64,000 nt of DNA from Phaeosaccion multiseriatum (Eukaryota; Protista; Ochrophyta, other classes), in assembly GCA_965112735.1 (NCBI GenBank), contig OZ218954.1:4030001-4094000 (forward strand), given 5' to 3'. A program made the translations under genes and the position numbers. Of this stretch, positions 40,985 to 64,000 are shown piece after piece. The notes under the pieces were generated by a model. It made no database searches, was not told the origin of the DNA, and saw only the letters and a list, made by a program, of their open reading frames with translations. Positions within the stretch are counted from its first letter, which is position 1. The number at the start of each line of letters is the position of its first letter.

Positions 40985-42847
40985 ATGCTGCGACAGCAGA
41001 CTATCGCATTGGTGGGATGCTACTGTTTGGGCTCCACCGCGGCCTTCTCCTTCCTCAGTGCGCCAATGCTCACAGGAGGCAGCGGCAGAAGCAGCGTTGC
41101 CTCTGCTGGGGCAGGACGGTCCTGCAGCAGCAACAGCATCTTTGACGCCTCTGCTTCTCCCAGCTGCGAAAGTAGAGGCGGGAGGCGGGGCGAGGCGCTT
41201 ATGTACAGTGCCTTTGCCAAGAAGGGGGGCAAGAAGGGCAAGAAGGGCAAGGGAGGCGCAGGGAGGGGAGGAGGTGCGTGGTAGTTTGACTTGCTCCCCA
41301 CGATCTGGAGTCGGAGACTCAAAATCGCGGAGGCCTTGCTCTGTACATGGCTGTGGTACTGCCGCACGGATAGGTGCAGCTGTTGAGCATCACTGTCATG
41401 GTTTTGAGTCCGGTCTCAGATCACCTCTGCACCTTTTGGGAACAAGTGTATACTCTGAATCCTCAACTGCGGCGACGCGACTCCTCAACGTGCTTCCCTG
41501 TTGCAACTTGCACCTTGCATCTCATCACAGGAGGCAAGGGCAAGTCCACTCCGAAGCCGAAGCCCTCGGCAACAGTGGACACGTCTCGCAAGGATTTCAT
41601 TTATCAAATGAATGGGCTCACCAAGGCACGTACCAACCATACCCAATGAGTGGCAAGCACCCAAGGAGTGAATGAGTGGACTCAGATTTGCCAAAGGATT
41701 GAATGAGTGGGCTCAAGGCAGAACAAAATGAGTGAATGGGTGGGCTCATCACGGCAAGTGCCGAATGAGTGGACTCCCACAAAGACAAGCAGCAGAGCCA
41801 GCCATCCTCGCCGGGGAGGAGCGCCGTTGAGCGCGCTCGAGGGTGTTGGCGAGGGAGCAGTGAGTCGAAGGGACAAAGAGAGAGAGAGCCGAGCTTCTTT
41901 ATCTGTACCCGATCCCACCCAACCCTCGCTGCCCAGCTGCTGCCGACTAGCCTGCGTCTGCTCCTGTCCCCATGCCTCTAACCAACCCCCTCCCTCTCCC
42001 TCCCCCCCCCCCCTCCCCCTCTCTCCCTCACCCTCCCCTCCTCCTCTCTGCCCCTGCACACTCAGACCTACGGTGGCCCCAAGGACGGCGGTAAGGGGGC
42101 AGTGCTCGAGAACATCAACTTGTCATTCTACCCCGGAGCAAAGATCGGAGTTTTGGGTAACAACGGGTCCGGTGAGTTTCGGTTTCACTTCCAATTCAGT
42201 CTGTCCTTGTTCGAACCCTAGCATTGTCCTGTCTGTCAGATTGGATTGGCTCTCCCTCCGGGACTGCGAAAGTGTACTCCACGCTGCGCAGCGCAAGTCC
42301 ACGCACTGCATCATTTGACACACCTTCGCGACGTGTCCCATCCCCTCCGTCCCGACCGAACGACAGAGATACCCACTCCTCCCTCCTCTTTCCCTCCCTC
42401 CCTCCCTCCCTCCCTCCCTCCCTTGCCCCCCCAGGCAAGAGTACCCTGATGAAGATCATGGCTGGCTTGGATGAGGAGTTCAACGGGGAGTCCCGCATGT
42501 CCGACTGGGCCCAGGTCCGCCACACGCACGCATCCACACACCCAACACTGTGCCCGCTCACCTACCGACTCACACACTTCATTCAATTCATGAAGTGTTT
42601 TGTGGAATGTTAAATATCTACTCGAACTAAAATGTCGACATCGACTCTCACTCCTGGCTTGCTGTAGGTGGGATATCTGTCACAGGAGCCGTCTTTGGAT
42701 GACGGAGAGTCGGTGGGAGAGAACATCCAGGTGAGTGCGCGGATGTGTTCCCACTCGTGCCTCTGACCCCCTGACTTTGGCTCTGCATATTATGCCTCAC
42801 CCCTGAACCCGAACCCTCCTCCTCACCCTTACCTTTACCCTCAACCT

Positions 42848-46100: not shown

Positions 46101-47901
46101 CTCCCTCCGTCCCTCCGTCCCTACCTCCCTCCCGCTGCTGCCATCCTTCCCCTTGGAGCAGTGGTGGGCGTGATCGGCCCCAACGGAGTGGGGAAGTCCA
46201 CTCTGCTGAAGATGATCGAGGGGACTTTGGAGCCCGACCAGGGGACCATGTCCGTCGGCAGCACCGTCGAGGTGGGTGCGGTTGGGTCCGACAGGTGCCC
46301 CCAAGTTTGGTTGCTCACACGCGGCTCCTCATCTCTCCTCTCCCCTTCGAGGCTGCTGTAACTGCAGTTGTCTTACCCCTCGCCCCCATCCACTGCCATC
46401 CTACGCCTGTGCTCACACGCCGCTGCTCCTGCCCCAATCCGCTGCCATCCTCCGTGCCCATCCACTGCCATCCACAGACCCTGTTTGTGGACCAAAATAG
46501 AGAGGGCCTTGATGATCCCAGCCTGACGGTGTACGACGCGGTGGCCGAGGGCATGGAGGAGCTCAACCTCGGCAGCAGGACCATAAACACCAAGCAGTAC
46601 CTCTCCTGGTTCAACTTCAGGTGGGTGGTGTGGCAGTGGATGGGATGGAGCGGATGGAGGAAGATGATGGCAGTGGATGGAGGTGGAGGATGGCATTGGA
46701 CCATGAAGTGTGAGCGTGTGACTGTACACGTGTACACATCCGTGTATGTGCATTACACACCCCCCTCTTGCCACACTTGTCACTTGTTCACTCATCCTTG
46801 CTCACCCTCGTTTCCCCTTTCGTTCCCTCCCTCCCTCCCTCCCCCAGGGGTGGAGATCACCAGAAACTCGTCAGCATGCTGTCGGGCGGGGAGCGAAACC
46901 GCCTTAACCTTGCCCGGACGCTGAAGAAGCCCGGCAACTTACTCATGCTCGATGAGCCCACGAACGACTTGGGTACGTGTGTGTGCGTGTGTGTGTGTGT
47001 GTGGGGGGGGTGATTGTGTGCGGGTTTGTGATGTGTGTGTTTTATGCTCGATGAGCCTACCACCGACTTGGGCGTGTGCATCCGTGGGTGTGTGTATGCG
47101 TGTGTGCATGTGAGCGTGTGTGTGTGTGTGGGCACGTGTGCGTGTGTGTGTGTGTGGATGTGTGCGTGCGCGCGTGCTTTGATATCGAGTCCCACCCGTC
47201 CACCGCCACCCTTGATATCTAGTCCCTCCCCATCCACTGCCATCCTTGAGAGTGCGTCTCACCCCCTACTGCCATCCTCCTCCTCTCTTCTCAGACGTGG
47301 ACACCCTGCGTGCTCTGGAGGAGGCCATCAGCGAGTTTGTGGGCAGCGCCATCATCGTGAGCCACGACCGTTACTTCCTAGACCGGGTGGCCACGCACAT
47401 GTGAGTAGAGTTAGCACGGGCATACTACCCCCCCCCCCTCTCTCCTTGCATCCCTCCCTTACCCTCTCCTCCCTTCTCGTGTATTCGTGCACCTCTTAAT
47501 CCCGCCTTTCACCCTGCCCCATTTCCTCTCTCCTCTCCTCTCCTCTCCTCTCCTCTCCTCTCCTCTTCTCTCCCCTCCTCCCCTTTCCTTCCCTCTCCTC
47601 TCCTCTCCTTCTCCTTTCCTCTCCCCTCCCCTCCTCTCCTCTCCTCTCCTCTCCTCTCCTCTCCTCTCCTCTCCCTTCCTCTCCTCTCCTCTCCCCTCCT
47701 CTCCTCTCCTCTCCTCTCCTCCCCTTCTCCTTCCCTCCTCCTCCCCTTCTCCTGCTCCCCTCCAGCCTTGCGTTCGAGGACTCTGGTGAGGTGACTTTCT
47801 ATCAGGGCAACTTCGGTGAATACGAGGCGGATCTGCACAGGCGGATCGGTATCACAGAGCCCAAGAGACCCACCTTCAGGCCCATCCCCTCCGTGCAGTA
47901 G
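40985..47901 (+). CDS. ettA: Energy-dependent translational throttle protein EttA (ABC-F, ChvD/YjjK), plastid-targeted; ~19 exons
   Basis: [153 protein letters not shown]. Leader [21 protein letters not shown]. Confidence 0.94.
42810..43130. repeat. (ACCCTC)n hexamer microsatellite in an ettA intron
   Basis: About 50 units, with a repeated internal variant (actctcagcttcgtcctc) occurring twice. Confidence 0.9.
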
Positions 47902-48211
47902 ATGGGATGGCAGTGGATGGATAGCAGTAGATGGACCATCCCCTCCTCGCAGTAGAGTATCATCTCAGAGCTATGATGGATGGGTGGATGGAGGGATGGA
48001 AGGATGGCAGCAGACGAGGGAGCGGAAGGAGCACACACCCGTCTAAAAATAGAAATAGGTATATAAATAGAACTGAAGAGTGATAAGGACCTTCTCCTCC
48101 AGTGTTGTTAGTGCGTCTCTCGCTCTCGCCCTCGCCATCACTCCTCCAGTCGGACCCAGCACGGGGCAAGAGTGCATGTCAGAGACAGGGTGGCCAACGC
48201 CAGCGTGGGCC

Positions 48212-49150
48212 ATGGCGGACGCGATTGCGCGGCCGGCGAGGAGGGTGGTAATCGTGGGGGCAGGGCTCTCCGGCCTCGTGGCCTGTGAGAGCATCGTGGA
48301 GCAGCCAGTACCAAGCGCTCTTGAAGCAGCAGGGAGGGGGCCCGCAAGCAGGAAGGAAGGACTCTCGCCCTCATCCTCGGAGGCGATGGCACCACTCCGG
48401 CGCCATCTGCGCAAGCCGCGGCCTCCGCCACCGCCACCGCCGGAGTAGGAGGGAAGCCTCCCGGGGTAGGGGGAGGGGCTACGGCCGTTGACCTTGGCGC
48501 GGCGTGGATGTGGCCAGAGAGCAATCCCCGCCTCTACGCCCTCTCCAAGAGACTAGGTAGGGCATGAGCCAGAGCAGGCTCTCTCTTGGTCCCATCGCGG
48601 CAGGGTAGCTCCCAAGGAGTTGATTTACGATTTTTTTTAGTTGTTGTTACTGCTGCTGGGGTATCAGGCTGCGTGCTTTGGGTTTTCCCTGTGTGTCGTG
48701 GTGACCCCCCAATCCGTATGGGCACCCAGGCTTCACACACAAAGCCCCTCTGGTACCATCCATGACCAAAACCGTGCCTCTCATTGTTGCTTGGGACAGG
48801 GGTGGAGAGCTTCTGCGACGAGGGAGACCCCTCGCAGCACAGGTTCACAGATGGCTCACACGCGCTGTCGGTGGAGCTGGCCAGGCGAGTGGGGCAGGCC
48901 GGAGGGGGGGGGGGGACAGGACAGGGGGGCAGAGGCAGGGGCCGGGCGGCGAAGGGGTGGGGGTGAAGCTGGTCTTAGGGGTCAGGATGACAACTGTGGA
49001 GCTTGTCCCCGAGGGAAGCAGTGGCAGTGGCAGCGTCCTCGTTTCTTACACGGAGGAGGAGGGGAAAAGAACGGAGCGCAGCAGCAGCAGTAAGACGCAA
49101 AGGTCAACGAGAGCCGATGTGGTGGTGTTTTGCACACCACTAAAGAAATG
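48212..49150 (+). pseudogene. Flavin-dependent amine oxidase-like gene, apparently frameshifted and 3'-truncated
   Basis: RVVIVGAGLSGL (Rossmann motif) in one frame; VDLGAAWMWPE.NPRL (48487) in another; later HRFTDGSHALSVELAR and ADVVVFCTP. No C-terminal half is seen before the next gene. Confidence 0.6.
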
Positions 49151-49222
49151 TGAAAGACGTGTGTGTTTTCCAATAGATCATTCCATTCTTAAAGAGCTTT
49201 GTTAACCTCTAGAATTTCCCTT

Positions 49223-50154
49223 CTACCACTTGCTTCCGCCCTTGTGTCCCTTGCCGCCCTTGTTCTTCTTGCCGCCCTTGTTCTTCTTGCCGCCTTTGTT
49301 CTTCTTGCCGCCCTTGTTTTTCTTGTGAGTGACAAGCGAGGGAATGGGAATGCGTGTGAGTGAGGAAGGAGAGGGGTGGGGGGAACGAGAAAGAGGAAAG
49401 ATGGTGGGGGAAAGACAAAGGGGAAGTAACCCACCTTTCCGTCCTTCTTGCCTCCCTTCTGTGTGAGTGACAACCGAGGGAGGGAGGACATGGGAGAGGT
49501 GTGCGAGTGACAAGGAGGGACAAGAGGGGGAGGGGTTAACAGAGGGGGGGGGGTGGAGAAATGCAAAGAACGTGAAGACAGCGGGAATGGGACACCAATG
49601 AAGCGAAAGCGAGACAGAGTACCTTTCCCCTCTGCGAGAGACAAGCACAACAAGACAAGCGAGAGAGGGAGAAAGAAGGGTGTGTGGTGGTGGGGGGAGA
49701 GACATAAAGAGGTAAGGACCTACCTTTCCCTTGCCCTTTCCCTTGCCGCCCTTCTGTGATGAGAGACAAGCGAGTCATTATAGGCAGTGAGAAGGGGAGA
49801 AGATTTGGGGAAGGGGGGAAGGTGAATGCCAGAAGAGGAGCGGCAGAGAAGGGATAACACAAAGGAAGCGCGCTAAGCTTTAAAATGGTATACCTTGCCC
49901 TTCTTGCCCTTGCCCTTGTCGGAGCTGCTGGAGGAGGAGGAGCTGCTGCTGCTGCCGCCGGAGGAGGACGACAAAGAGGACGAGCTGTCCGGCGAGCTCG
50001 AGTGCTGAGGGGGAGGGGCAGTCCAGGTCCCCAGCCTTCGGGGCTGAAGGGGAGCCTCCTCGCGCGTCTTCAGCTCGTCGTTGGCGGTCTCGGCGGTGGC
50101 CTGGTTGATGGCGAGGAAGGCCAGGAGGGCGGTGCCGAAGAAGGAGAAGCGCAT
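49223..50154 (-). CDS. Secreted Ser-rich/Lys-Gly-rich protein A with RRL motif and micro-exon tail (silaffin-like composition)
   Basis: Exons 50154-49894 (signal peptide, PRRL, poly-Ser, DKGKGKKGK), 49753-49724 (KGGKGKGKGK), 49631-49623 (RGK), 49458-49435 (KGGKKDGK), 49321-49223 ((KNKGGK)x4 GHKGGSKW*). All introns are phase 0 GT-AG. Confidence 0.8.
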
Positions 50155-50358
50155 GGTGTTCAGGTGAAGGTCTTGAGGTAGGCTGTAGGAGTGCGGGTTG
50201 GTTTGTGATCTGATCTCCTCTCTTGGCCCATGGCTGGATATAGCTAACGCCACCCAAAGCAATATTTCATTTTTAACGCGCGGGGTTTTGCAAGAATAAC
50301 AACGCGCGGGCCCGAGCATCTCGAGCAGTTGGGTCTTCGGACTCACAGAATTACTGAC

Positions 50359-50722
50359 TTACTGGAACCCTTTTATTCCCCCCCCCCTTTTATGATATTG
50401 GCTCTCCGACTTCACCACTTTACCACCATCCCTGCCTTTTCCTTTTCCCTTGCCGCCTTTCTGTGAGTGAACACAACAAGAGAGAGAAGAGACGGATGTG
50501 TGTGAGTAAGAACTGTGTGAGAGAGAGACGGAGAGGGGGAGAAGCGCGACGTGCCTTTCCCTTCTGCGAGAGACAAGCGGGGACAAGCGAAAGGGGGGTA
50601 AGAGAGAAGACAAGAGAGAATTGAGATGTATGTGAGTGACAGGCGATAGACCAGCAAGACAAGCGAGAGTGGAGTACCGCAGGGATGTAGCAACACACCT
50701 TTCTCTTTCCCTTGCCGCCCTT
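50359..50722 (-). pseudogene. Orphan 3' Lys/Gly micro-exons of a disrupted family member
   Basis: 50722-50699 KGGKGKRK; 50563-50555 KGK (GC donor); 50460 onward KGGKGKGKGRDGGK. Introns resemble those of genes A and B. Confidence 0.65.
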
Positions 50723-51209
50723 CTGTGAGGGGCAAAGCGAGAGAGAGTGAAGGAGAAGAAGGAGGTGCGTAAGCGAGAGGAAGCGAAGCGAGTCCATTCA
50801 CGAAGGAGCTGCTCACTCGTACGTAGGGTTTCCCCCGGAAGAGAGCGCGATGAGAGCTTAAATTAACTATAACTAAAATTATGTACCACAATCACTGAGA
50901 TATATCTATATACAGTCCATCCTACATACATCTCACCCTTCCCGAGTTACCCAACAGGCTCCATCTCCCATTCTATTCCATTCTATTCCTTTCCATCCCA
51001 TACTATCCGCCCTCCGCACAGAGCGGTGCATATTTTAATTAATGAATTGAAGCCTCCCCACCCCCTAAGGCCTCCCTTGGCTGGCTGGCTGGCTGGCTGG
51101 CCTGCTCTTCTACCATGACAGCACCCTCGGAGTTGCCGCCCCCCAAGTTCACCGCCATCAGCGCACCGTCATCAGACTTTGCCAATTCCTCTGAGATGTA
51201 GCCTGAGGA

Positions 51210-52509
51210 CTAGTCTGTGGCCCAAACGTTAACGTTACTCATCGGTGAGTCCGGGGGGGTGCGCGCTGCAGCTGAGGCTGCGAGGCATCCATTGGAGGGC
51301 AGGCCGAGCTCCGAGCACTCCCCAGGAGGGTTGCTGACGAAGTACGTCGGAGGGCTGTGTTTGCTCCAAGGGCGGCGGGTGAGCGGCATGGGAGGGCGAG
51401 GTTCGTGAGACGGCAAGAAGAAAGTCGTAGGCGGCGAATCCAAAGGGGCGCAGACAGAGCAGAGAGTTAGGCCCGTTTGGGGTGTGTGTGGAACCAGCCA
51501 GGCAATCGGGATGAGCCAAGGAGATGCAGTGCCCTGAGTGGAGGGTGCCTGCAAAGCAAGTGAGAGGCGGCACAAGCGACAACAATCCTGTGCAGCGTGA
51601 TAAGAGATTCGACTGTGCTCACCATGCGCCATCTTCCCCTGGAATGCAGCACGAGGTGGCAATGTCACTGGTGGCGTCGTACGGCCTGTACACCTGAGGA
51701 GGCCAGCCGAGCAAAGAGGTTCAGAGGATCAAGCAAAAGTGCGCGACGGCGTACGTGCCGTGAAAGGAAAAGCATAAGGCTCACCGGCGGTTGGCAGGCC
51801 CGTGCGGTTTCGCAAGTCACTCGAGAGTGGCCCTTGGCACGAACGGAAGAGCAAGAAGCTTCGCCACTGCACACCGCACTCGCGCAGCACGACTGCTCGG
51901 AGTCCTCTCCTTCCAGAGACTCGCACAGATTGATACCCCGAGGAGCGAAGCACGACACGTGCGAGACGCAAAGGGCTCAGGAGGCACCAGTACGGGGCGG
52001 AAGAGCGAGCAAGAGCGAGAGAAAGAGTTGCTTGTCCGACTACTCTCGCAACATCAGTAATGCTTCTTCGTCTCTCTCACCATGCAGCTGTTTGGTCCCC
52101 GGCACAAAGCGGTGGACTGACTCAGAAGAGCTGCGCGAAAGCATGCGAAAGCGTCCTCGCACACCACACGTGAAGTCCCGCTGAAGGTGGTGAGACGACA
52201 GCTGTCCTCCCCGCTGCAGACCACGTTGCAGTTCTCAAAGCTCTTGATGGAGGGCTCAGGGTCCCACACGCTACTGCAGGCATTGGAATCTGCCCCCTCT
52301 GCCGTGGGCAGGAAGGGGACGGAGCAGACGAAGCTCCTGTCTTCCGTGGGGTCGCAGGCGCACGTTTCGTACAGGCCACCAATGGTCGCGTCTTCCCGAT
52401 ACGCGTTAGCATCTCCGGTGAAGTGCACGCACGCCTCTTTGAAGCTGAGGCTGCTGCCTCCCCCGCTGAGGAGGACAAGGCCCAGCGCCGACAGCCGCGC
52501 AGTCATCAT
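51210..52509 (-). pseudogene. Secreted Cys-rich repeat protein, diverged copy 1 (exon-2 acceptor AG>GG, early TAG)
   Basis: Paralog of 52988-54520. Acceptor reads cctcggggtatc versus ccccagggtatc. TAG at 51212-51210 lies upstream of still-homologous MAVNL..VM coding. Confidence 0.6.
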
Positions 52510-52987
52510 TAGGACCTCGTCTCGACTGGATCTTAGCGAGAGCGAGGGGCAGAGAGTCAGGAGACTCGCGAGCCCACCCTCCAGCTATATCAAGCCTGCC
52601 CTCAGTTCCCCTCCCCTTATCGCTATTCTCTCCTGAAATTACTCTTGTTTAGCGCCAACACTTCTTGGGCAACTAGTCGGGCTTCGGAGACTCACAGTTG
52701 TCGAGGGAGGCTTCCAGTCTCACCGCGACATGGACGGCCTTGACTCTCTGAATGCAGTGAGCTGCGCGACAGTGTCTGTAGCGACTGATGAGAAGACGTG
52801 AAGCGAGTCTAAGGCTGCCTCTGGCTTCCTTCCTCGTAAGCAGAGCCAGCGGTGGTGAGGGAGCGAGACGGGAGCCTTTTACATTTTATACAATTAATTT
52901 ACATGAAAGGAAAAGAGAAATTGGATGCTAAATACCTATCCCTCCACCCCCCCATCCTCAGTCCGGTCTTATTAGCTGGCTGGCTTG

Positions 52988-54520
52988 CTACTGTATCATG
53001 ACCACCGTCTCGAAGCCAACTTCCTCTAAGTTCACCGCCAACCGCACTCCCTCCCCAAATACAATGTCATCATCGTCTTCCCCCGTGTAGGGTAGCACAG
53101 TCGGCCCCTCCCAGTAGGATGCCGCTGCCGGCATCTCGGGGCAGCTCTGTGCAGGCAGGCCGAGCTCCGAGCACTCCCCAGCGGCGTTGCTGTGAGCGGC
53201 ACGGGAGGGAGAGATTGGTGGGACGGTGAGTTGTAAGACGTCCACAGCGACTCCAAAGGGACCAGGCAGAGGAGAGGGCGGTGCGGAGTGAAGGGAAGCA
53301 GGTCAGGGCAGTGAAGGTGAGCGAAGGGGAGAACCAAACGCAAGAAGAGAATGAAGTAACCAATGAAGATGAAATTCCCGCGAAGAGCAGGGCCAGTGGG
53401 CACTCCCAGAGAGAATGAGGGAGAGCGCATTCAACAAGAAAGCCTTTTGCGCGTGCTGAGCGGCATCAGGAGACGATCAGCCCCTCCCCAACCCCCCCGT
53501 GTTGTGTGACGGGGACACTGCACTGTGCTCACCATGCACCCTCTTCCTCCGAGATGCAGCACGACGTGGCAGTCTCGGCACTTAAATATGAGGTGCGCTC
53601 CTGCAGAGGATCAGACAAAGTGTTTGAGCGGCGTGCGGGCGTGGCAGCAACAGACAGACACTTCACTCGTCATTCGTAAGCACCCCCCCATCAATGGAGA
53701 GAGGCAGGCAGTAAGCAAGCACTTGCGTACTCCAGGCCCGTGCCAGCGAACCGCTTGGCGAAGTATTCTCCTCACCAGCGCTTGGCAGGCCCGTGCGGTT
53801 TCGCAAGTCACTCGAGAGTGACCCTGGGCACTGATGGAAGAGCAAGAAGCTTCGCCACTGCACATCGCACTCGCGCAGCACGAATCGGAGTCCTGTCTTC
53901 CCTCTCCTTGCAGAGACTCGCACAGGTTGATACCCTGGGGAGCGGAGCACGAGACGCACGAAAAGCAACAGGCAGTTTCAGGAGGCAGCAGCCAGTACGG
54001 GGCGGAAGAGCGAGCAAGGGGTAAGAGAGCAGAGCCGCGTATCGGAATTTTGTAACACTCAGCAATGCTTCTTCGTCTTTCTCACCATGCAGCTGTTTGG
54101 TCCCCGGCACAAAGCGGTGGACTGATTCAGAAGAGCTGCGCGATAGCATGCGTAATCGCCCTCACAAGCCACACGTGAAGTCCCGCTGAAGGTGGTAAGG
54201 TCACAGCTGTCCTTCCCGCTGCAGACCACGTTACAGTTCTCAAACGTCTTGAAGGAGGGCTCAGGGTCCCACACGCTACTGCAGGCATTGGAATCTGCCC
54301 CCTCTGCCGTGGGCAGGAAGGGGGCGGAGCAGACAAAGCTCCTGTCTTCCGTGGGGTCGCAGGCGCACGTTTCGTACAGGCCACGAATGGTCGTGTCTCC
54401 CCGGTACGCGTTAGCATCTCCGGTGAAGCGCACGCACGCCTCTTTGAAGCTGAGGCTGCTGCCTCCCCCGCTGAGGGGGGCAAGGCCGAGCGCTGACAGC
54501 CCCAGCTTCAAGCCAATCAT
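52988..54520 (-). CDS. Secreted Cys-rich CxGxxSC-repeat protein, copy 2 (~287 aa, 4 exons)
   Basis: Exons 54520-54086, 53934-53776, 53600-53533 and 53189-52988 join in frame. Hydrophobic N-terminus; repeats VCSGKDSC, ACEGDYAC, LCRGPNSC, MCSGEASC, TCETARAC. Confidence 0.78.
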
Positions 54521-55974
54521 AATTCACACGTAGTCTGCCCTGGAGCTTAGCGAGAGCGACGTGTGCGGGGGGAGTGGAAGAGACCTGATGGAGGGATGAA
54601 AGTGGGAGGGGGGAAGCAAATCAGCACCAACCTCGATTCCCCTGCGATTCGACAAGGATAGAGGGTCCTCGCGGTCGTGCTACAGAGATAAAAAATAGAA
54701 GTACGAGATAGAATGCCAAGATGAACGGGAGCGCGTATATTGCAGCGAGCTTCCCTGAACTCCCCCTCAGCAGGCGCAAAAACGCAGCGCCTGGCTGCCT
54801 GCAAAATAGACTTACCTTTGCCTGCTCCAAGGATCTTGGTCGTGCGGGTGAGAGACCTTGTGAGGGGGATAAAGCGCAATGGCAGCTCTGGGGGAGCAGA
54901 GCTCGTGTGTGTCGTTAATTTTGTAGTGGTGTTTTGCTCTTCCCCCCAACAGGCAAGAATTAGCGCGAACTGGTTGTCCAAACTTGCGTCGCCAGCCTGT
55001 ATTCTCCTCCCCCCTTTTTCCCTTATCATTCTTGGGGAAAAAATAGGCAAGTGAAAAGGCTATAAGAGCGGTATCGACCTGCACCTTACAGACCCAGTAT
55101 ACACTATCCTTGTCTAAGGTCTACAGCTCTTTGCGCCCAAAAAATGGCTATTTTCTTCTGCTTGGTTTTGCGCGGTCATATGGGGTGGGAGGGGGGTGGA
55201 CTTGGTGGGTGGGGGGTTGGGGGATGGAGACCAAGGGCAATGCAGTGAGAGAAGCACAGAGAGAGAGAGTGAAAGAGGGAGAGGGACAGAGAGTGAGAGG
55301 GAGATGGAGAGAGGGAGAAAAAGAGACGGTCTGACTGCGAGAAAGAGCAAACCGTAGAGGTGTATGGGGAGAGGAGGCTGTGAATGGGACACACACCGCT
55401 TACCAACTCCTGCAGCCCCAGCCAGGGGGGGGGGCTTAGTCAGGCTCGTCGCGTAGAGAGTCATACTTAGCGGTACATTCTGTAACTGTTGCTTATGTTG
55501 CCCTCCAATTTTTTGTGTCTTTACATTGAAAGAAATCGATAGGAGATAGCCATTCAACAGGAGACCTACCACTGGGAGCAAGGCTGTGGTAGTGCATGCA
55601 CTCTCTAAACCCGTTGAGTATTGTCGCGCTTTAGCACAGGACACGCACCCACGCACGCACCCGCTCACTCACTTCCTCCCTCATTCACGTCCTCAACCAT
55701 GTGATGAAGCGGGCACTGAGCTCCGACGGCACGCGATATATGAGAGGGTCTTGCTGGAACTGCAGCAATCGCTTTCCAGGCCGGGGGGCAGCCAGCGCAG
55801 GAGGGTGCACCACCCGCCCTAGTGAGTTTCTGACTGACTGCCCTCCCCTCCCCTCTTGGACCCTCACAAGTGCTGCTTGCTCTGTTAGCGCAGTGCTCGA
55901 TGCAACGAATCTGCGCAAGATGACGGACACAGCGGCGCGGGTTCCGGCGTACGCACACCGCAGACCCTCCGGAG

Positions 55975-56222
55975 GCCTGACGGTGTACGACGCGGTGGCC
56001 AAGGGCATGGAGGAGGTCAACCTCGGCAGCAGGACCATCAGCACCAAGCAGTGCCTCTCCTGGTTCAACTTCAGGTGGGTGGGATGGCAGTGAATGGAGG
56101 AGGCGGAGGAGGAGGATGGCAGTGGATGGGATGGAGCGGATGGAGAAAGATGATGGCAGTGGATGGAGGTGGAGGATGGCATTGGACCATGAAGTGTGAG
56201 TGTGTGACTCTACACGCGTACA
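55975..56222 (+). pseudogene. Captured fragment of ettA (exon 3' part plus following intron; copy of 46521-46736)
   Basis: gcctgacggtgtacgacgcggtggcc...tggttcaacttcag|gtgggtgg plus the intron with atggcagtggatgg motifs; only a few substitutions and one small insertion. Confidence 0.88.
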
Positions 56223-56360
56223 AGGCCAGGAGGGCGGTGCCGAAGAAGGAGAAGCGCATGTGATGTCGGGGGGTTGCAAAGATATACTTAATACGCGCCG
56301 CGCAGCATCTCGAGCAGTTGGGGCTTTGGACTCACAGAATTGTTGACTTACTGGAACCTT
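56222..56360 (-). pseudogene. 5' stub (MRFSFFGTALLA and upstream region) of a disrupted Lys/Gly micro-exon gene
   Basis: 56222-56260 is identical to 50117-50155; 56268-56360 resembles 50280-50372. Confidence 0.8.
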
Positions 56361-56669
56361 TTTTCGATCGGAGCTGATTCCAAGGCGGCTCAAGAGTGGC
56401 TCAAACTAAGATTCACAAGCGGCTTAAACGGCTGGTCATTCGTGCCTCAAGTCTCACTCAACTGCGAAAGCACACTTTCATTTTTAGAGAGAGTGATAAA
56501 GCTACAATAACCATGGTGGTAGGAGAGGGTCTTGATGTCTCACGGGTCGTCCTCTGGAGCAAGGCAACACTTCTACATCAGAGGAATAGACACCAGCTGA
56601 TGACATGGCCTTCCATTAATAGATACGAGCAATTTAATCTGTCAATAAAGAGTTTTCGACCTTACCACT

Positions 56670-58344
56670 TCACCACCACTTTCCCTTTCCCTTGCCGCCC
56701 TTCTGTGAGTGACAAGCGACAAGAGCGGAGCGAAGAGAGGGAGGTGCGTGAGTGAAAAGTGGTGAGAGAGATACAGAGAGACGCATGGCAGGCACAACGT
56801 ACCCTTCCTTTTCCCTTGCCGCCCTTCTGTGAGTGAAAGCAACAAGAGAGGGAGGTGTGTGAGTAAGACCTGTGAGAATATGACAGAGAGAGGATAGAAG
56901 GAAGAGGCGGAACAGACCTTTCTTTTGCGATGCTTCTTTCCCTTCTTGTTCTGATGATAAAGTGAGAGAGAGTGAAGGAGAAGTAGGAGGTGGGTGAGTG
57001 ACAATCTAGACACAATCAAGAAAAGCGAGAGGATAGAAGGAGCGGAACACACCTTTCTCTTGCGATGCTTCTTTCCCTTGGACTTGTCCTTGGAAGAATC
57101 CTTGCTGTCCTTGGAGGAATCCTTGCTGTCCGAGAAATCCTTGCTGACAGATGCTACTGTCCACACAGGCTGAGGCGTGGGCTTTGGAGTGGTTGGGGGA
57201 GGGGAGGAAAAAGAGGGGGTTGTGGGGTGAGGGGAGGAGGAAGGAGCAAAGGTAGAGAGAGAGGCTGAGCAGGATACATGAGGAGGCTGGTCTTCTTCAT
57301 TTGAAGCAGCACGAGGTGCCTGTGCCACGGGCAAAGCATGGAGTCTCTCGAGGCAGTGAATGCATACATCATACCTTTGCGGTCCACACAGGCGTGGGAG
57401 CGGGAGGGACTGGGGCTGGACAGGCGTAGACGTCAAGTCCGTGGTAGGTGCCGGGCGCACGGCAGCCACCAGGGGCTCCAACACAGCCGTCGGCGGAGTA
57501 GTCATCCTGACACTCGCCAGTGGTGTCGGTAGCAAAGTTGCACTCCGGACGGTGCGGGTTGAGGCCTCCCTCCCTGCAGCAGACGTAGCAGGAGGACATA
57601 GGGGCAGGGGTCGGAGCCACGGGAGGGTCCGTCCAGGTAGGCTTGGGCGTGGGAGGAGCCCTCCAGATAGGCGCAGGAGTGGGTACGTATGTGGGCGCCT
57701 TGGTGGGCTGTTGTCGGAGGAGCGAGAGCCGAAAGATTGCAACAGATGCGTGAAGTGGCGCCGCGGGGAGGTGGAGTGGGAGGGGTGAGGAGAAAGTACA
57801 GGCCGGGCGAGGTTTAGCGGTAAGCACCAAGACGAGGTTTCCTTCATTGTAGTCTAGCGGGAATGCGACGAGCATCGGTGCCTCTGAGGAAGTAAATTCT
57901 GACCTTGTAGGTGGGTGCCGGAGTAGGGTGCATCGTCGGGGTGTACGGCGTGTTGTTGATGGGAGAGGGGCGGCCGGAGGGTGGCAAGAGATGCGAGGCA
58001 CACGTAAAGTGCCGCACGAAGTGGAACGACGAGGGGAGGAGGAACAGGCAGAGGCAGAGGGGATCTTAAAAGCGGGGGCTTCTGGTCTTGCTTCTTTTAC
58101 GGTAGCACAGGAAGCACATGGGCCTCTTGGACCATTGCTGCCTTACCTTCATGGTAGGTGCGGGGGTAGTCCCCGTCCAGACAGGCGCGGGAGTGGGTCT
58201 AGACCAGTACCGGCGCCACGGTGACGACCTCAAACTCCTGCGCTCAGGGTCGCGCTCACTCGGCTCGTCGTTGGCGATGGCCTGGTGCATGACCAAGAAG
58301 GCCAGCAGGGCGGTCACGAGGAAGGAGAGCCGCATGATGCTCAT
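56670..58344 (-). CDS. Secreted protein B: signal peptide, RRSLR, PTPAP/Trp stalk, small Cys domain, SKDS repeats, Lys/Gly micro-exon tail
   Basis: Exons 58344(or 58335)-58147, 57707-57375, 57169-57053, 56950-56918 (NKKGKKHRKRK), 56826-56803 (KGGKGKGR), 56702-56670 (KGGKGKGKWW*). All phase 0 GT-AG. Confidence 0.8.
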
Positions 58345-62132: not shown

Positions 62133-64000
62133 GTCTTATTAGCTGGCTGGCTTGCTACTGTATCATGACCACCGTCTCGAAGCCAACTTCCTCTAAGTTC
62201 ACCGCCAACCGCACTCCCTCCCCAAATACAATGTCATCATCGTCTTCCCCCGTGTAGGGTAGCACAGTCGGCCCCTCCCAGTAGGAGGCCACTGCCGGCA
62301 TCTCGGGGCAGCTCTGTGCAGGCAGGCCGAGCTCCGAGCACTCCTCAGCGGCGTTGCTGTGAGCGGCACGGGAGGGAGAGATTGGTGGGACGGTGAGTTG
62401 TAAGACGTCCACAGCGACTCCAAAGGGACCAGGCAGAGGAGAAGGCCGTGCGGAGTGAAGGGAAGCAGGTCGGGGCAGTGAAGGTGAGCGAAGGGGAGAA
62501 CCAAACGCAAGAAGAGAATGAAGTAACCAATGAAGGTGAAATTCCCGCGAAGAGCAGGGCCAGTGGGCACGCCCAGAGAGAAAGAGGGAGAGCGCATTCA
62601 ACAAGAAAGCCTTTTGCGCGTGCTGAGCGGCATCAGGAGACGATCAGCCCCTCCCCAACCCCCCCGTGTTGTGTGACGGGGACACTGCACTGTGCTCACC
62701 ATGCATCCTCTTCCTCCGAGATGCAGCACGACGTGGCAGTCTCGGCACTTAAATATGAGGTGCGCTCCTGCAGAGGATCAGACAAAGAGGTTGAGCGGCG
62801 TGCGTGCGTGGCGGCAACAGACAGACACTTCACTCGTCATTCGTAAGCACCCCCCCATCAATGGAGAGAGGCAGGCAGTAAGCAAGCACTTGCGTACTCC
62901 AGGCCCGTGCCAGCGAACCGCTTGGCGAAGTATTCTCCTCACCAGCGCTTGGCAGGCCCGTGCGGTTTCGCAAGTCACTCGAGAGTGACCCTGGGCACTG
63001 ATGGAAGAGCAAGAAGCTTCGCCACTGCACATCGCACTCGCGCAGCACGAATCGGAGTCCTGTCTTCCCTCTCCTTGCAGAGACTCGCACAGGTTGATAC
63101 CCTGGGGAGCGGAGCACGAGACGCACGAAAAGCAACAGTCAGTTTCAGGAGGCAGAAGCCAGTACGGGGCGGAAGAGCGAGCACGAGCGAGAGAGCAGAG
63201 CCGCGTATCGGAATTTTGTAACACTCAGCAATGCTTCTTCGTCTCTCTCACCATGCAGCTGTTTGGTCCCCGGCACAAAGCGGTGGACTGATTCAGAAGA
63301 GCTGCGCGATAGCATGCGTAATCGCCCTCACAAGCCACACGTGAAGTCCCGCTGAAGGTGGGAAGGTCACAGCTGTCCTCCCCGCTGCAGACCACGTTAC
63401 AGTTCTCAAACGTCTTGAAGGAGGGCTCGGGGTCCCACACGCTACTGCAGGCATTGGAATCTGCCCCCTCTGCCGTGGGCAGGAAGGGGGCGGAGCAGAC
63501 AAAGCTCCTGTCCTCCGTGGGGTCGCAGGCGCACGTTTCGTACAGGCCACGAATGGTCGCGTCCTCCCGATACGCGTTAGCATCTCCGGTGAAGCGCACG
63601 CACGCCTCTTTGAAGCTGAGGCTGCTGCCTCCCCCGCTGAGAGGGGCAAGGCCGAGCGCTGACAGCCCCAGCTTCAAGCCAATCATGATTCACACGTAGT
63701 CTGCCCTGGAGCTTAGCGAGAGCGACGTGTGCGGGGGGAGTGGAAGAGACCTGATGGAGGGATGAAAGTGGGAGGGGGGAAGCAAATCAGCACCAACCTC
63801 GATTCCCCTGCGATTCGACAAGGATAGAGGGTCCTCGCGGTCGTGCTACAGAGATAAAAAATAGAAGTACGAGATAGAATGCCAAGATGAACGGGAGCGC
63901 GTATATTGCAGCGAGCTTCCCTGAACTCCCCCTCAGCAGGCGCAAAAACGCAGCGCCTGGCTGCCTGCAAAATAGACTTACCTTTGCCTGCTCCAAGGAT
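62133..64000. repeat. Recent direct segmental duplication of 52966-54834 (continues past the window end)
   Basis: Colinear and only sparsely substituted over ~1.87 kb, offset ~9.17 kb. Confidence 0.92.
62155..63686 (-). CDS. Secreted Cys-rich CxGxxSC-repeat protein, copy 3
   Basis: Near-identical to 52988-54520, including introns and splice sites. Confidence 0.78.

Follow-up and report, generated by a model that had tools for sequence, protein, structure and literature searches.

Micro-exon genes (MEGs) of schistosomes encode secreted proteins by joining a signal-peptide first exon to symmetric exons as short as 6–9 nucleotides (nt); they expand by duplication and are missed by automatic annotation (10.1101/2023.06.21.545858). 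Here we describe two genes of comparable design, genes A and B, in a window of 64,000 nt (the whole stretch of DNA analysed) from the ochrophyte protist Phaeosaccion multiseriatum (contig OZ218954.1, positions 4,030,001 to 4,094,000). Both lie on the minus strand of what is nuclear DNA of eukaryotic type, with a G+C content of 55–63% in the window, and both are very probably genuine genes whose predicted polycationic protein tails are encoded by micro-exons.

Two further groups of proteins offer points of comparison. Sandcastle-worm cement and mussel foot proteins are secreted, disordered, Gly/Lys-rich polycations that are paired with poly(phospho)serine polyanions. Diatom genes of the silaffin type are intron-poor. 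The diatom silaffins, cingulins and SFLPs that such genes encode carry a signal peptide and a short propeptide that ends at an RxL site, followed by Ser-rich and Lys-rich blocks, KxxK motifs (x = S or G), pentalysine clusters, PT repeats and, in some variants, many Trp residues, with no conserved fold. A published screen for silaffin-like proteins looks for a signal peptide, repeated KXXK motifs (X = S or G) spaced 1–6 residues apart, pentalysine clusters (5 Lys in 12–14 residues) and RXL (PMC5501833).

Gene A (50154–49223, minus strand) reads as five exons of 261, 30, 9, 24 and 99 nt that together encode 140 amino acids, with four introns between them (140, 92, 164 and 113 nt), each GT..AG and in phase 0. 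Its parts are as follows, with carets here and below marking splice boundaries.

49894..50154, minus strand: gene A exon 1, 261 nt; signal peptide, acidic propeptide to RRL, poly-Ser block and start of the K/G tail; donor AAG^GTATAC
49724..49753, minus strand: gene A micro-exon 2, 30 nt, KGGKGKGKGK; acceptor CACAG, donor AAG^GTAGGT
49623..49631, minus strand: gene A micro-exon 3, 9 nt, RGK; acceptor context GCTTGTCTCTCGCAG
49435..49458, minus strand: gene A micro-exon 4, 24 nt, KGGKKDGK
49223..49321, minus strand: gene A last exon, 99 nt including the stop; ends KW then stop

The last exon of gene A is built from five tandem copies of an 18-nt unit encoding KNKGGK (91% matches) and contains, 9 nt in, a second in-frame AAG acceptor. 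If left unspliced, gene A would reach a stop codon 6 codons into intron 1. Gene B (58344–56670, minus strand) has six exons of 198, 333, 129, 33, 24 and 33 nt, encoding 249 amino acids.

58147..58344, minus strand: gene B exon 1, 198 nt; signal peptide, acidic propeptide to RSL and start of a Trp-punctuated Pro/Thr stalk
57375..57707, minus strand: gene B exon 2, 333 nt; Pro/Thr/Trp stalk and an 8-Cys domain without detectable relatives
57053..57181, minus strand: gene B exon 3, 129 nt; SKDS-type zwitterionic repeats, then GKKHRKRK
56918..56950, minus strand: gene B micro-exon 4, 33 nt, NKKGKKHRKRK
56803..56826, minus strand: gene B micro-exon 5, 24 nt, KGGKGKGR; donor AGG^GTACGT
56670..56702, minus strand: gene B last coding exon, 33 nt including the stop, KGGKGKGKWW then stop

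Unspliced, gene B would meet a stop 26 codons into its first intron. Its third intron (102 nt) is a multiple of 3 and holds no in-frame stop, such that retention of this intron would keep the frame.

The exon anatomy of the two genes is regular throughout. All 9 introns are GT..AG and in phase 0, each of the 11 exons is divisible by 3 in length, and no junction breaks the Lys/Gly frame that the ATG sets; the alternative frames of the purine islands read RAARE or GRQGK, and the ATG frame reads Lys/Gly already at the end of exon 1. Donors are AAG^GT in nine of ten cases (counting that of a relic exon, described below) and AGG^GT in the tenth, with acceptors of the forms ..CACAG, ..CGCAG, ..TCAG, ..AAAG and ..CAAG. 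An original prediction, made by a model from the letters of the window, had drawn much of this picture, and it holds in these respects: every coordinate it gave and each junction it proposed (49894^49753, 49724^49631, 49623^49458 and 56918^56826) matches the sequence, the divisibility by 3 and the phase 0 that it described hold for every exon and intron of both genes, exons do nearly all end in AAG, and both intact genes close on Trp. Its remark that the skipping of any one exon would leave the frame intact is correct as arithmetic, as all exons are multiples of 3.

These signals exceed chance expectation. The motif AG^AARGGNGGNAAR has six exact matches in the tails, each preceded by a pyrimidine tract, and an unrelated seventh at 41220 on the plus strand; with at most one mismatch it occurs 20 times in the 64 kb, where shuffles predict 1.8. 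When both strands of the window were scanned for AG/GT-bounded K/G/R micro-exons, candidates with a pyrimidine-rich acceptor turned up in these tails only. The tail introns are 74–80% C+T, and five of them carry a branch-point-like ACTCAC motif 34–47 nt before the acceptor. The same motif stands 38 nt before the CTCACAG acceptor of an intron in an unrelated neighbouring gene and thus looks like a general splice or branch-point signal of this genome.

Genes A and B are paralogues, given that their signal-peptide exons are homologous (63% identity, E 1e-9), and their tails bear traces of local duplication. In gene B, the 33-nt exon and the start of its intron repeat the end of the 129-nt exon together with the ~25 nt of intron that come right after it; in the core of this repeat, by which exon 4 duplicates the end of exon 3, 44 of 47 aligned positions are identical. 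Nine cassettes can be aligned over TCGCT-TGTC(A/T)CTC(A/G)CAG^AAGGGCGGCAAGGGAAA. The 11-mer TGTCACTCACA, with one mismatch allowed, matches nine sites in the window (1.3 expected), and seven of these are in tail introns. Between cassettes, exons are 88–92% identical and introns 60–73%. The earlier claim that the intron-plus-exon cassettes resemble one another therefore needs narrowing: the likeness is real for the exon and for the 20–45 nt ahead of it, where it mainly lies, and does not extend to introns in general, as only two intron pairs exceed shuffled controls over their full length (z 4.0 and 2.5). What intron likeness remains is old divergence or shared composition, and the acceptor-proximal block may have been kept as a splice signal. 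Cassette duplication is thus supported by the sequence.

The window also contains broken pieces of the family and a conserved element upstream of gene A.

56222..56363, minus strand: A-type head fragment; 97-nt upstream element and the first 39 nt of the signal-peptide exon
50407..50776, minus strand: decayed B-type tail fragment, colinear with gene B 57001–56657 from the third intron to the end; 66% identity over 384 nt
50722–50699 (24 nt), 50563–50555 (9 nt, GC donor) and 50460 onward (with an insertion), minus strand: exon relics of the tail fragment
~57957–57904, minus strand: relic exon in gene B intron 1; coding-like Pro/Thr sequence (..TPYTPTMHPTPAPTYK), then a GT donor
50281..50374, minus strand: conserved element upstream of gene A with a perfect GTAAGT donor inside

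The original prediction spoke of a broken third copy. Related broken pieces do exist, but they are two fragments 5.5 kb apart that differ in divergence rather than one copy. Compared with gene A, the head fragment is 80% identical over the 97 nt of the upstream element (92% in a 60-nt core) and 100% identical over 39 nt of exon, after which homology stops. The tail fragment, just upstream of gene A, is identical to the gene A 9-nt exon in the acceptor context of its own 9-nt exon; in its last exon, an 8-nt insertion puts the TGGTGGTAA end out of frame and destroys the WW-stop ending. Given the gap in divergence (100% and 80% at the head, 66% in the tail), the pieces need not be halves of one gene, and for the same reason we rejected an arrangement in which they would be one simple, target-site-like duplication on either side of an insertion. 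The relic exon of gene B has no in-frame AG acceptor, with CAACAAC in the homologous position in place of CAACAG. The relics serve as controls for the look of decay at this locus, and genes A and B show none of these local defects—GC donor, frameshift, lost stop context or missing acceptor. Upstream of gene A, the GTAAGT donor and a pyrimidine-rich CAG acceptor ~30 nt ahead of the ATG may bound an intron of ~175 nt in the 5′ untranslated region. The GTAAGT-bearing upstream element is also present at the head fragment (56363–56267, minus strand).

Both predicted proteins are very probably secreted and floppy. By inspection, each opens with a signal peptide (M-R, a hydrophobic core of the type ..TALLAFL.. 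and A-x-A before an acidic stretch), with predicted cleavage after ..QATA in protein A. An RxL site follows the acidic stretch—..QPRRL, with G next, at residues 37–41 of protein A and ..ERRSL, with R next, at residues 34–38 of protein B—and we infer cleavage after RxL. Protein A continues with a poly-Ser block (22 S in 29 amino acids) and a tail of 54 residues, nearly all Lys and Gly, that closes on KW; its mature form, 99 residues long, contains 29 K, 26 G and 23 S, with an isoelectric point (pI) of 10.9. Mature protein B, of 211 residues, has 41 Lys+Arg against 15 acidic residues (pI 10.0) and ends in 30 residues of Lys, Arg and Gly that close on KWW. The net charge of the tail is about +26 in both proteins.

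The likeness to Schistosoma MEGs lies in the short internal tail exons (30, 9 and 24 nt in gene A; 33 and 24 nt in gene B; MEG exons measure about 6–81 nt), all phase 0-0, and in the placement of the signal peptide in a conventional first exon. The micro-exons of MEGs, however, number 10–20 per gene and form most of the coding sequence, compared with 63 of 420 nt in gene A (15%, three exons) and 57 of 747 nt in gene B (8%, two exons), where they are confined to the C-terminal tail. The introns here span 91–164 nt rather than up to 5 kb, in a GC-rich protist. Alternative splicing, the hallmark of MEGs, would here be a prediction from the gene sequence. Neither exon 1 of gene A nor the 8-Cys exon of gene B matched a trematode MEG in either of two protein collections (5.8 billion clusters and 1.84 billion representatives).

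Proteins A and B share with the diatom proteins the signal peptide and short propeptide to RxL, the Ser- and Lys-rich blocks, the Lys motifs, the occurrence of Trp-rich variants and the lack of a conserved fold, and they pass the silaffin-like sequence screen for signal peptide, KXXK, pentalysine and RXL, with PT repeats in protein B. K[SG][SG]K motifs number six in protein A (of 16 KxxK of any kind) and two in protein B (of 12), and windows of 14 amino acids with at least five K number 54 and 39, respectively. They differ in having no homology to that group and no known link to silica, and their Lys block is a terminal Lys/Gly tail predicted from micro-exons. With marine bioadhesives, protein A has in common a polycation and a Ser block, here in one chain, which would suit charge-driven condensation; it and protein B differ in having no Tyr/DOPA-rich motifs, no homology and a host from another kingdom. 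The kinship of A and B to MEGs and to silaffin-like proteins is one of theme, not of descent.

Sequencing reads provide a further view of the locus. A 9.6-kb stretch matched four public DNA runs from one sample, although a query of this length can mask a small RNA run, and the reads were compared as short contigs over 49000–54900. Across that interval the runs (X1–X4) differ from the assembly by ~1.5% plus small indels and contain 0.74–0.76 of sampled words, and we thus take them to represent another haplotype or strain and not the exact source of the window. The contigs cross the predicted introns at exon-like depth and without splice joints; joints reported in the comparison were cross-mapping between paralogues, not splicing. 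One contig (49133–49892) spans all four introns of gene A at 98.5% identity, with 11 substitutions and several indels. All of its frame-breaking indels (1, 1, 5 and 2 nt) fall in predicted introns, as does a 3-nt insertion, and the only indel within exons 2–5 is the in-frame loss of one 18-nt KNKGGK unit. This pattern fits the gene model without being statistically decisive. Close versions of the locus do differ in tail length in their DNA, and the 98.5% version may be an allele, a strain variant or a very recent paralogue; the genomic 18-nt unit is the only length variation observed. In exon 1, a 3-nt in-frame insertion (50105), seen at partial depth and in other contigs only, may come from a paralogue. 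The signal-peptide exon is covered at ~6x the local baseline and several contigs leave it into other sequence, pointing to further family members.

Searches for relatives found none. Exon 1 of gene A had no match among proteins of 48–152 amino acids, no exon exceeded the cut-off in Pfam, a protein atlas search with the 8-Cys exon of gene B found none, and neither a metagenome protein scan nor an Rfam scan gave a match. Two matches of the 8-Cys exon among the 1.84 billion representatives lay in giant repeat proteins and were set aside as spurious, and six metagenome matches to the cassette DNA pattern, all of them in ordinary coding DNA or in purine-rich DNA, lacked CT-rich introns and are attributable to chance. 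An AlphaFold model of the 8-Cys exon (pLDDT 54) was too poor for a fold search. These blanks have a limited reach. A 691-amino-acid ankyrin open reading frame (ORF) of the same window drew only generic ankyrin matches, with nothing nearly identical among the proteins of the collection. The entire genome therefore seems to be missing there, and blank protein searches are consequently uninformative on annotation or expression.

With moderate confidence, we read genes A and B as intact tandem paralogues of a lineage-specific family of secreted, largely disordered proteins, in which constitutively spliced micro-exons would encode a polycationic tail that serves as an electrostatic anchor or condenser. 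Each protein would open with the homologous signal peptide and short acidic propeptide ending in RxL, continue with an interchangeable middle (poly-Ser in A; Pro/Thr/Trp stalk, 8-Cys domain and SKDS repeats in B) and end in a Lys/Gly polycation that has one or two Trp as its last residues. This tail would be pieced together from phase-0 micro-exons of 9–33 nt that sit between short CT-rich introns. New exon-plus-intron cassettes would arise by local duplication, with the 18-nt repeat in the last exon of gene A slipping in length; because the cassettes are symmetric and made of AAG and GGN codons, duplication, loss or a slip of the acceptor keeps the frame. Short introns favour intron-by-intron recognition (intron definition), under which exon skipping is rare, and with introns of only 91–164 nt constitutive splicing, one intron at a time, is more likely. 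The products would then enter the secretory pathway and be cut after RxL, leaving a tail that would most likely act by charge on acidic or sulfated wall polysaccharide, on the (phospho)serine blocks of the family itself or on silica. The Ser block of protein A could be phosphorylated or glycosylated, which, together with the polycation, would give it the design of zwitterionic self-assembling matrix proteins and make A and B candidate components of a wall, an adhesive or a mineral matrix. Of all this, the sequence itself establishes the anatomy, the paralogy, the traces of duplication and the length variant in the DNA, whereas splicing, secretion, processing at RxL and function are deduced.

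Several observations weigh against this account. The public runs found with the 9.6-kb stretch are all of DNA, and neither the two protein collections nor metagenomes yielded a homologue of any exon. The tail donors (GTATAC, GTACTC, GTCTGT and others) differ from the GTGAG of all six neighbouring-gene introns, and the acceptor of the last exon of gene A is the weaker CAAG. In the variant contig, 2 of 11 substitutions fall in the 21% of sequence that is coding, one synonymous and one Lys to Glu, with no depletion in exons, and the placement of its indels is not significant taken alone (p about 0.4 for four indels, coding 21%). Finally, the role that we find most likely, anchoring or condensing within a wall, an adhesive or a mineral matrix, is judged by composition only.

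The symmetry of the exons could make the tails adjustable: the micro-exons might be skipped or trimmed by alternative splicing, giving graded tail lengths and charges per gene, as in schistosome MEGs, which provide the precedent (10.1101/2023.06.21.545858). We judge this quite unlikely. Every internal tail exon is indeed a phase-0 multiple of 3, each AAG codon is a potential in-frame acceptor (as with the two 9 nt apart at the last exon of gene A), so that a sloppy choice would only trim the tail, the tail donors seem weaker than those of neighbouring genes and retention of intron 3 of gene B would be frame-neutral. Duplication of a single phase-0 cassette, however, yields symmetric exons of itself, so that symmetry is no argument for regulation; introns of this size favour intron definition on general grounds, most of them would yield a premature stop or a frameshift if retained, the runs found are DNA only and the sole length variation seen is the genomic 18-nt indel. 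Distinctly improbable, in our view, is the fuller version, in which the arrays would act as a splicing-level rheostat laid over DNA-level changes in cassettes and repeats to set the tail length and charge of matrix proteins. Conversely, the tails may not be expressed as predicted, with A and B truncated after exon 1 or decaying and the K/G islands mere relics. The want of transcripts and homologues, the decayed tail next door (50776–50407), the dead exon within gene B and the undepleted substitutions in the tail exons of gene A would all suit such an account, which we nevertheless find rather improbable: splice sites, frames and stops are intact through nine introns, in the true relic nearby a donor is GC, 8 nt shift the frame and the stop context is lost, and exon identity between cassettes exceeds intron identity.

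As to function, A and B could be analogues of silaffins or cingulins in which, after cleavage at RxL, a phosphorylated Ser block and a modified Lys tail self-assemble and template silica. Both satisfy all of the sequence criteria of the published screen (PMC5501833), but those are compositional rather than silica-specific, there is no homology to diatom proteins, and the organism has no known silica link; silica templating is on this account unlikely, and we rank it second to an anchor in a wall, adhesive or matrix. Very improbable is a role as precursors of secreted cationic antimicrobial or anti-grazer peptides released at RxL. The signal peptide, acidic propeptide, very basic product (pI 10–11) and terminal Trp have the right character, as does a tandem, fast-evolving and lineage-specific family, yet products of 99 and 211 residues that nearly lack hydrophobic residues, with a poly-Ser block or a Pro/Thr stalk and 8-Cys domain, would be more typical of matrix proteins than of membrane-active peptides.

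If the predicted splicing is true, the preferred reading would make this locus a clear case outside flatworms of a secreted low-complexity module assembled from symmetric micro-exons, with a visible evolutionary route through cassette duplication, slippage of an 18-nt repeat and frame-safe AAG acceptors. Were the rheostat also true, MEG-like variation would extend beyond animals, to an assembly of wall, glue or silica that is driven by charge. A family outside diatoms that has the full silaffin 'grammar' would help to separate silica-specific features from those of charged extracellular matrices in general. Gene finders that are standard or work from ORFs will cut such proteins short after exon 1. 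The present value of the locus is that of a well-defined and testable gene model, not of a demonstrated mechanism.

Other genes of the window include ankyrin, LRR and kinase genes, and the Lys-tail genes share their locus with a second tandem family on the minus strand, of Cys-rich secreted proteins without a Pfam match (N1, 54520–52990; N2, 52509–51100; and a copy at 64000–62130). N1 and N2 lie between the head and tail fragments and are unrelated to the Lys-tail genes; as the two sets are interleaved, the locus is a mosaic of two secreted-protein families. The copy at the end of the window, which extends past its edge, matches N1 at 98.2% identity over 1872 nt. In the first intron of N2 (~51945, minus strand), ..CCTCGG^GGTATC stands where N1 has the acceptor ..CCCCAG^GGTATC; with this AG lost, N2 may be a pseudogene or use another acceptor. 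Further along, a long purine-rich microsatellite of the (GGAGA)n type (47500–47760) adjoins plus-strand exons of an ABC-ATPase-like gene, recognised by eye from a motif at ~47300–47400. A dispersed repeat with the unit GGATGGCAGTGGATGG and a period of 16–23 nt occurs at 47900–47990 and 56080–56190, downstream of gene A and beside the head fragment, apparently within introns of plus-strand genes.

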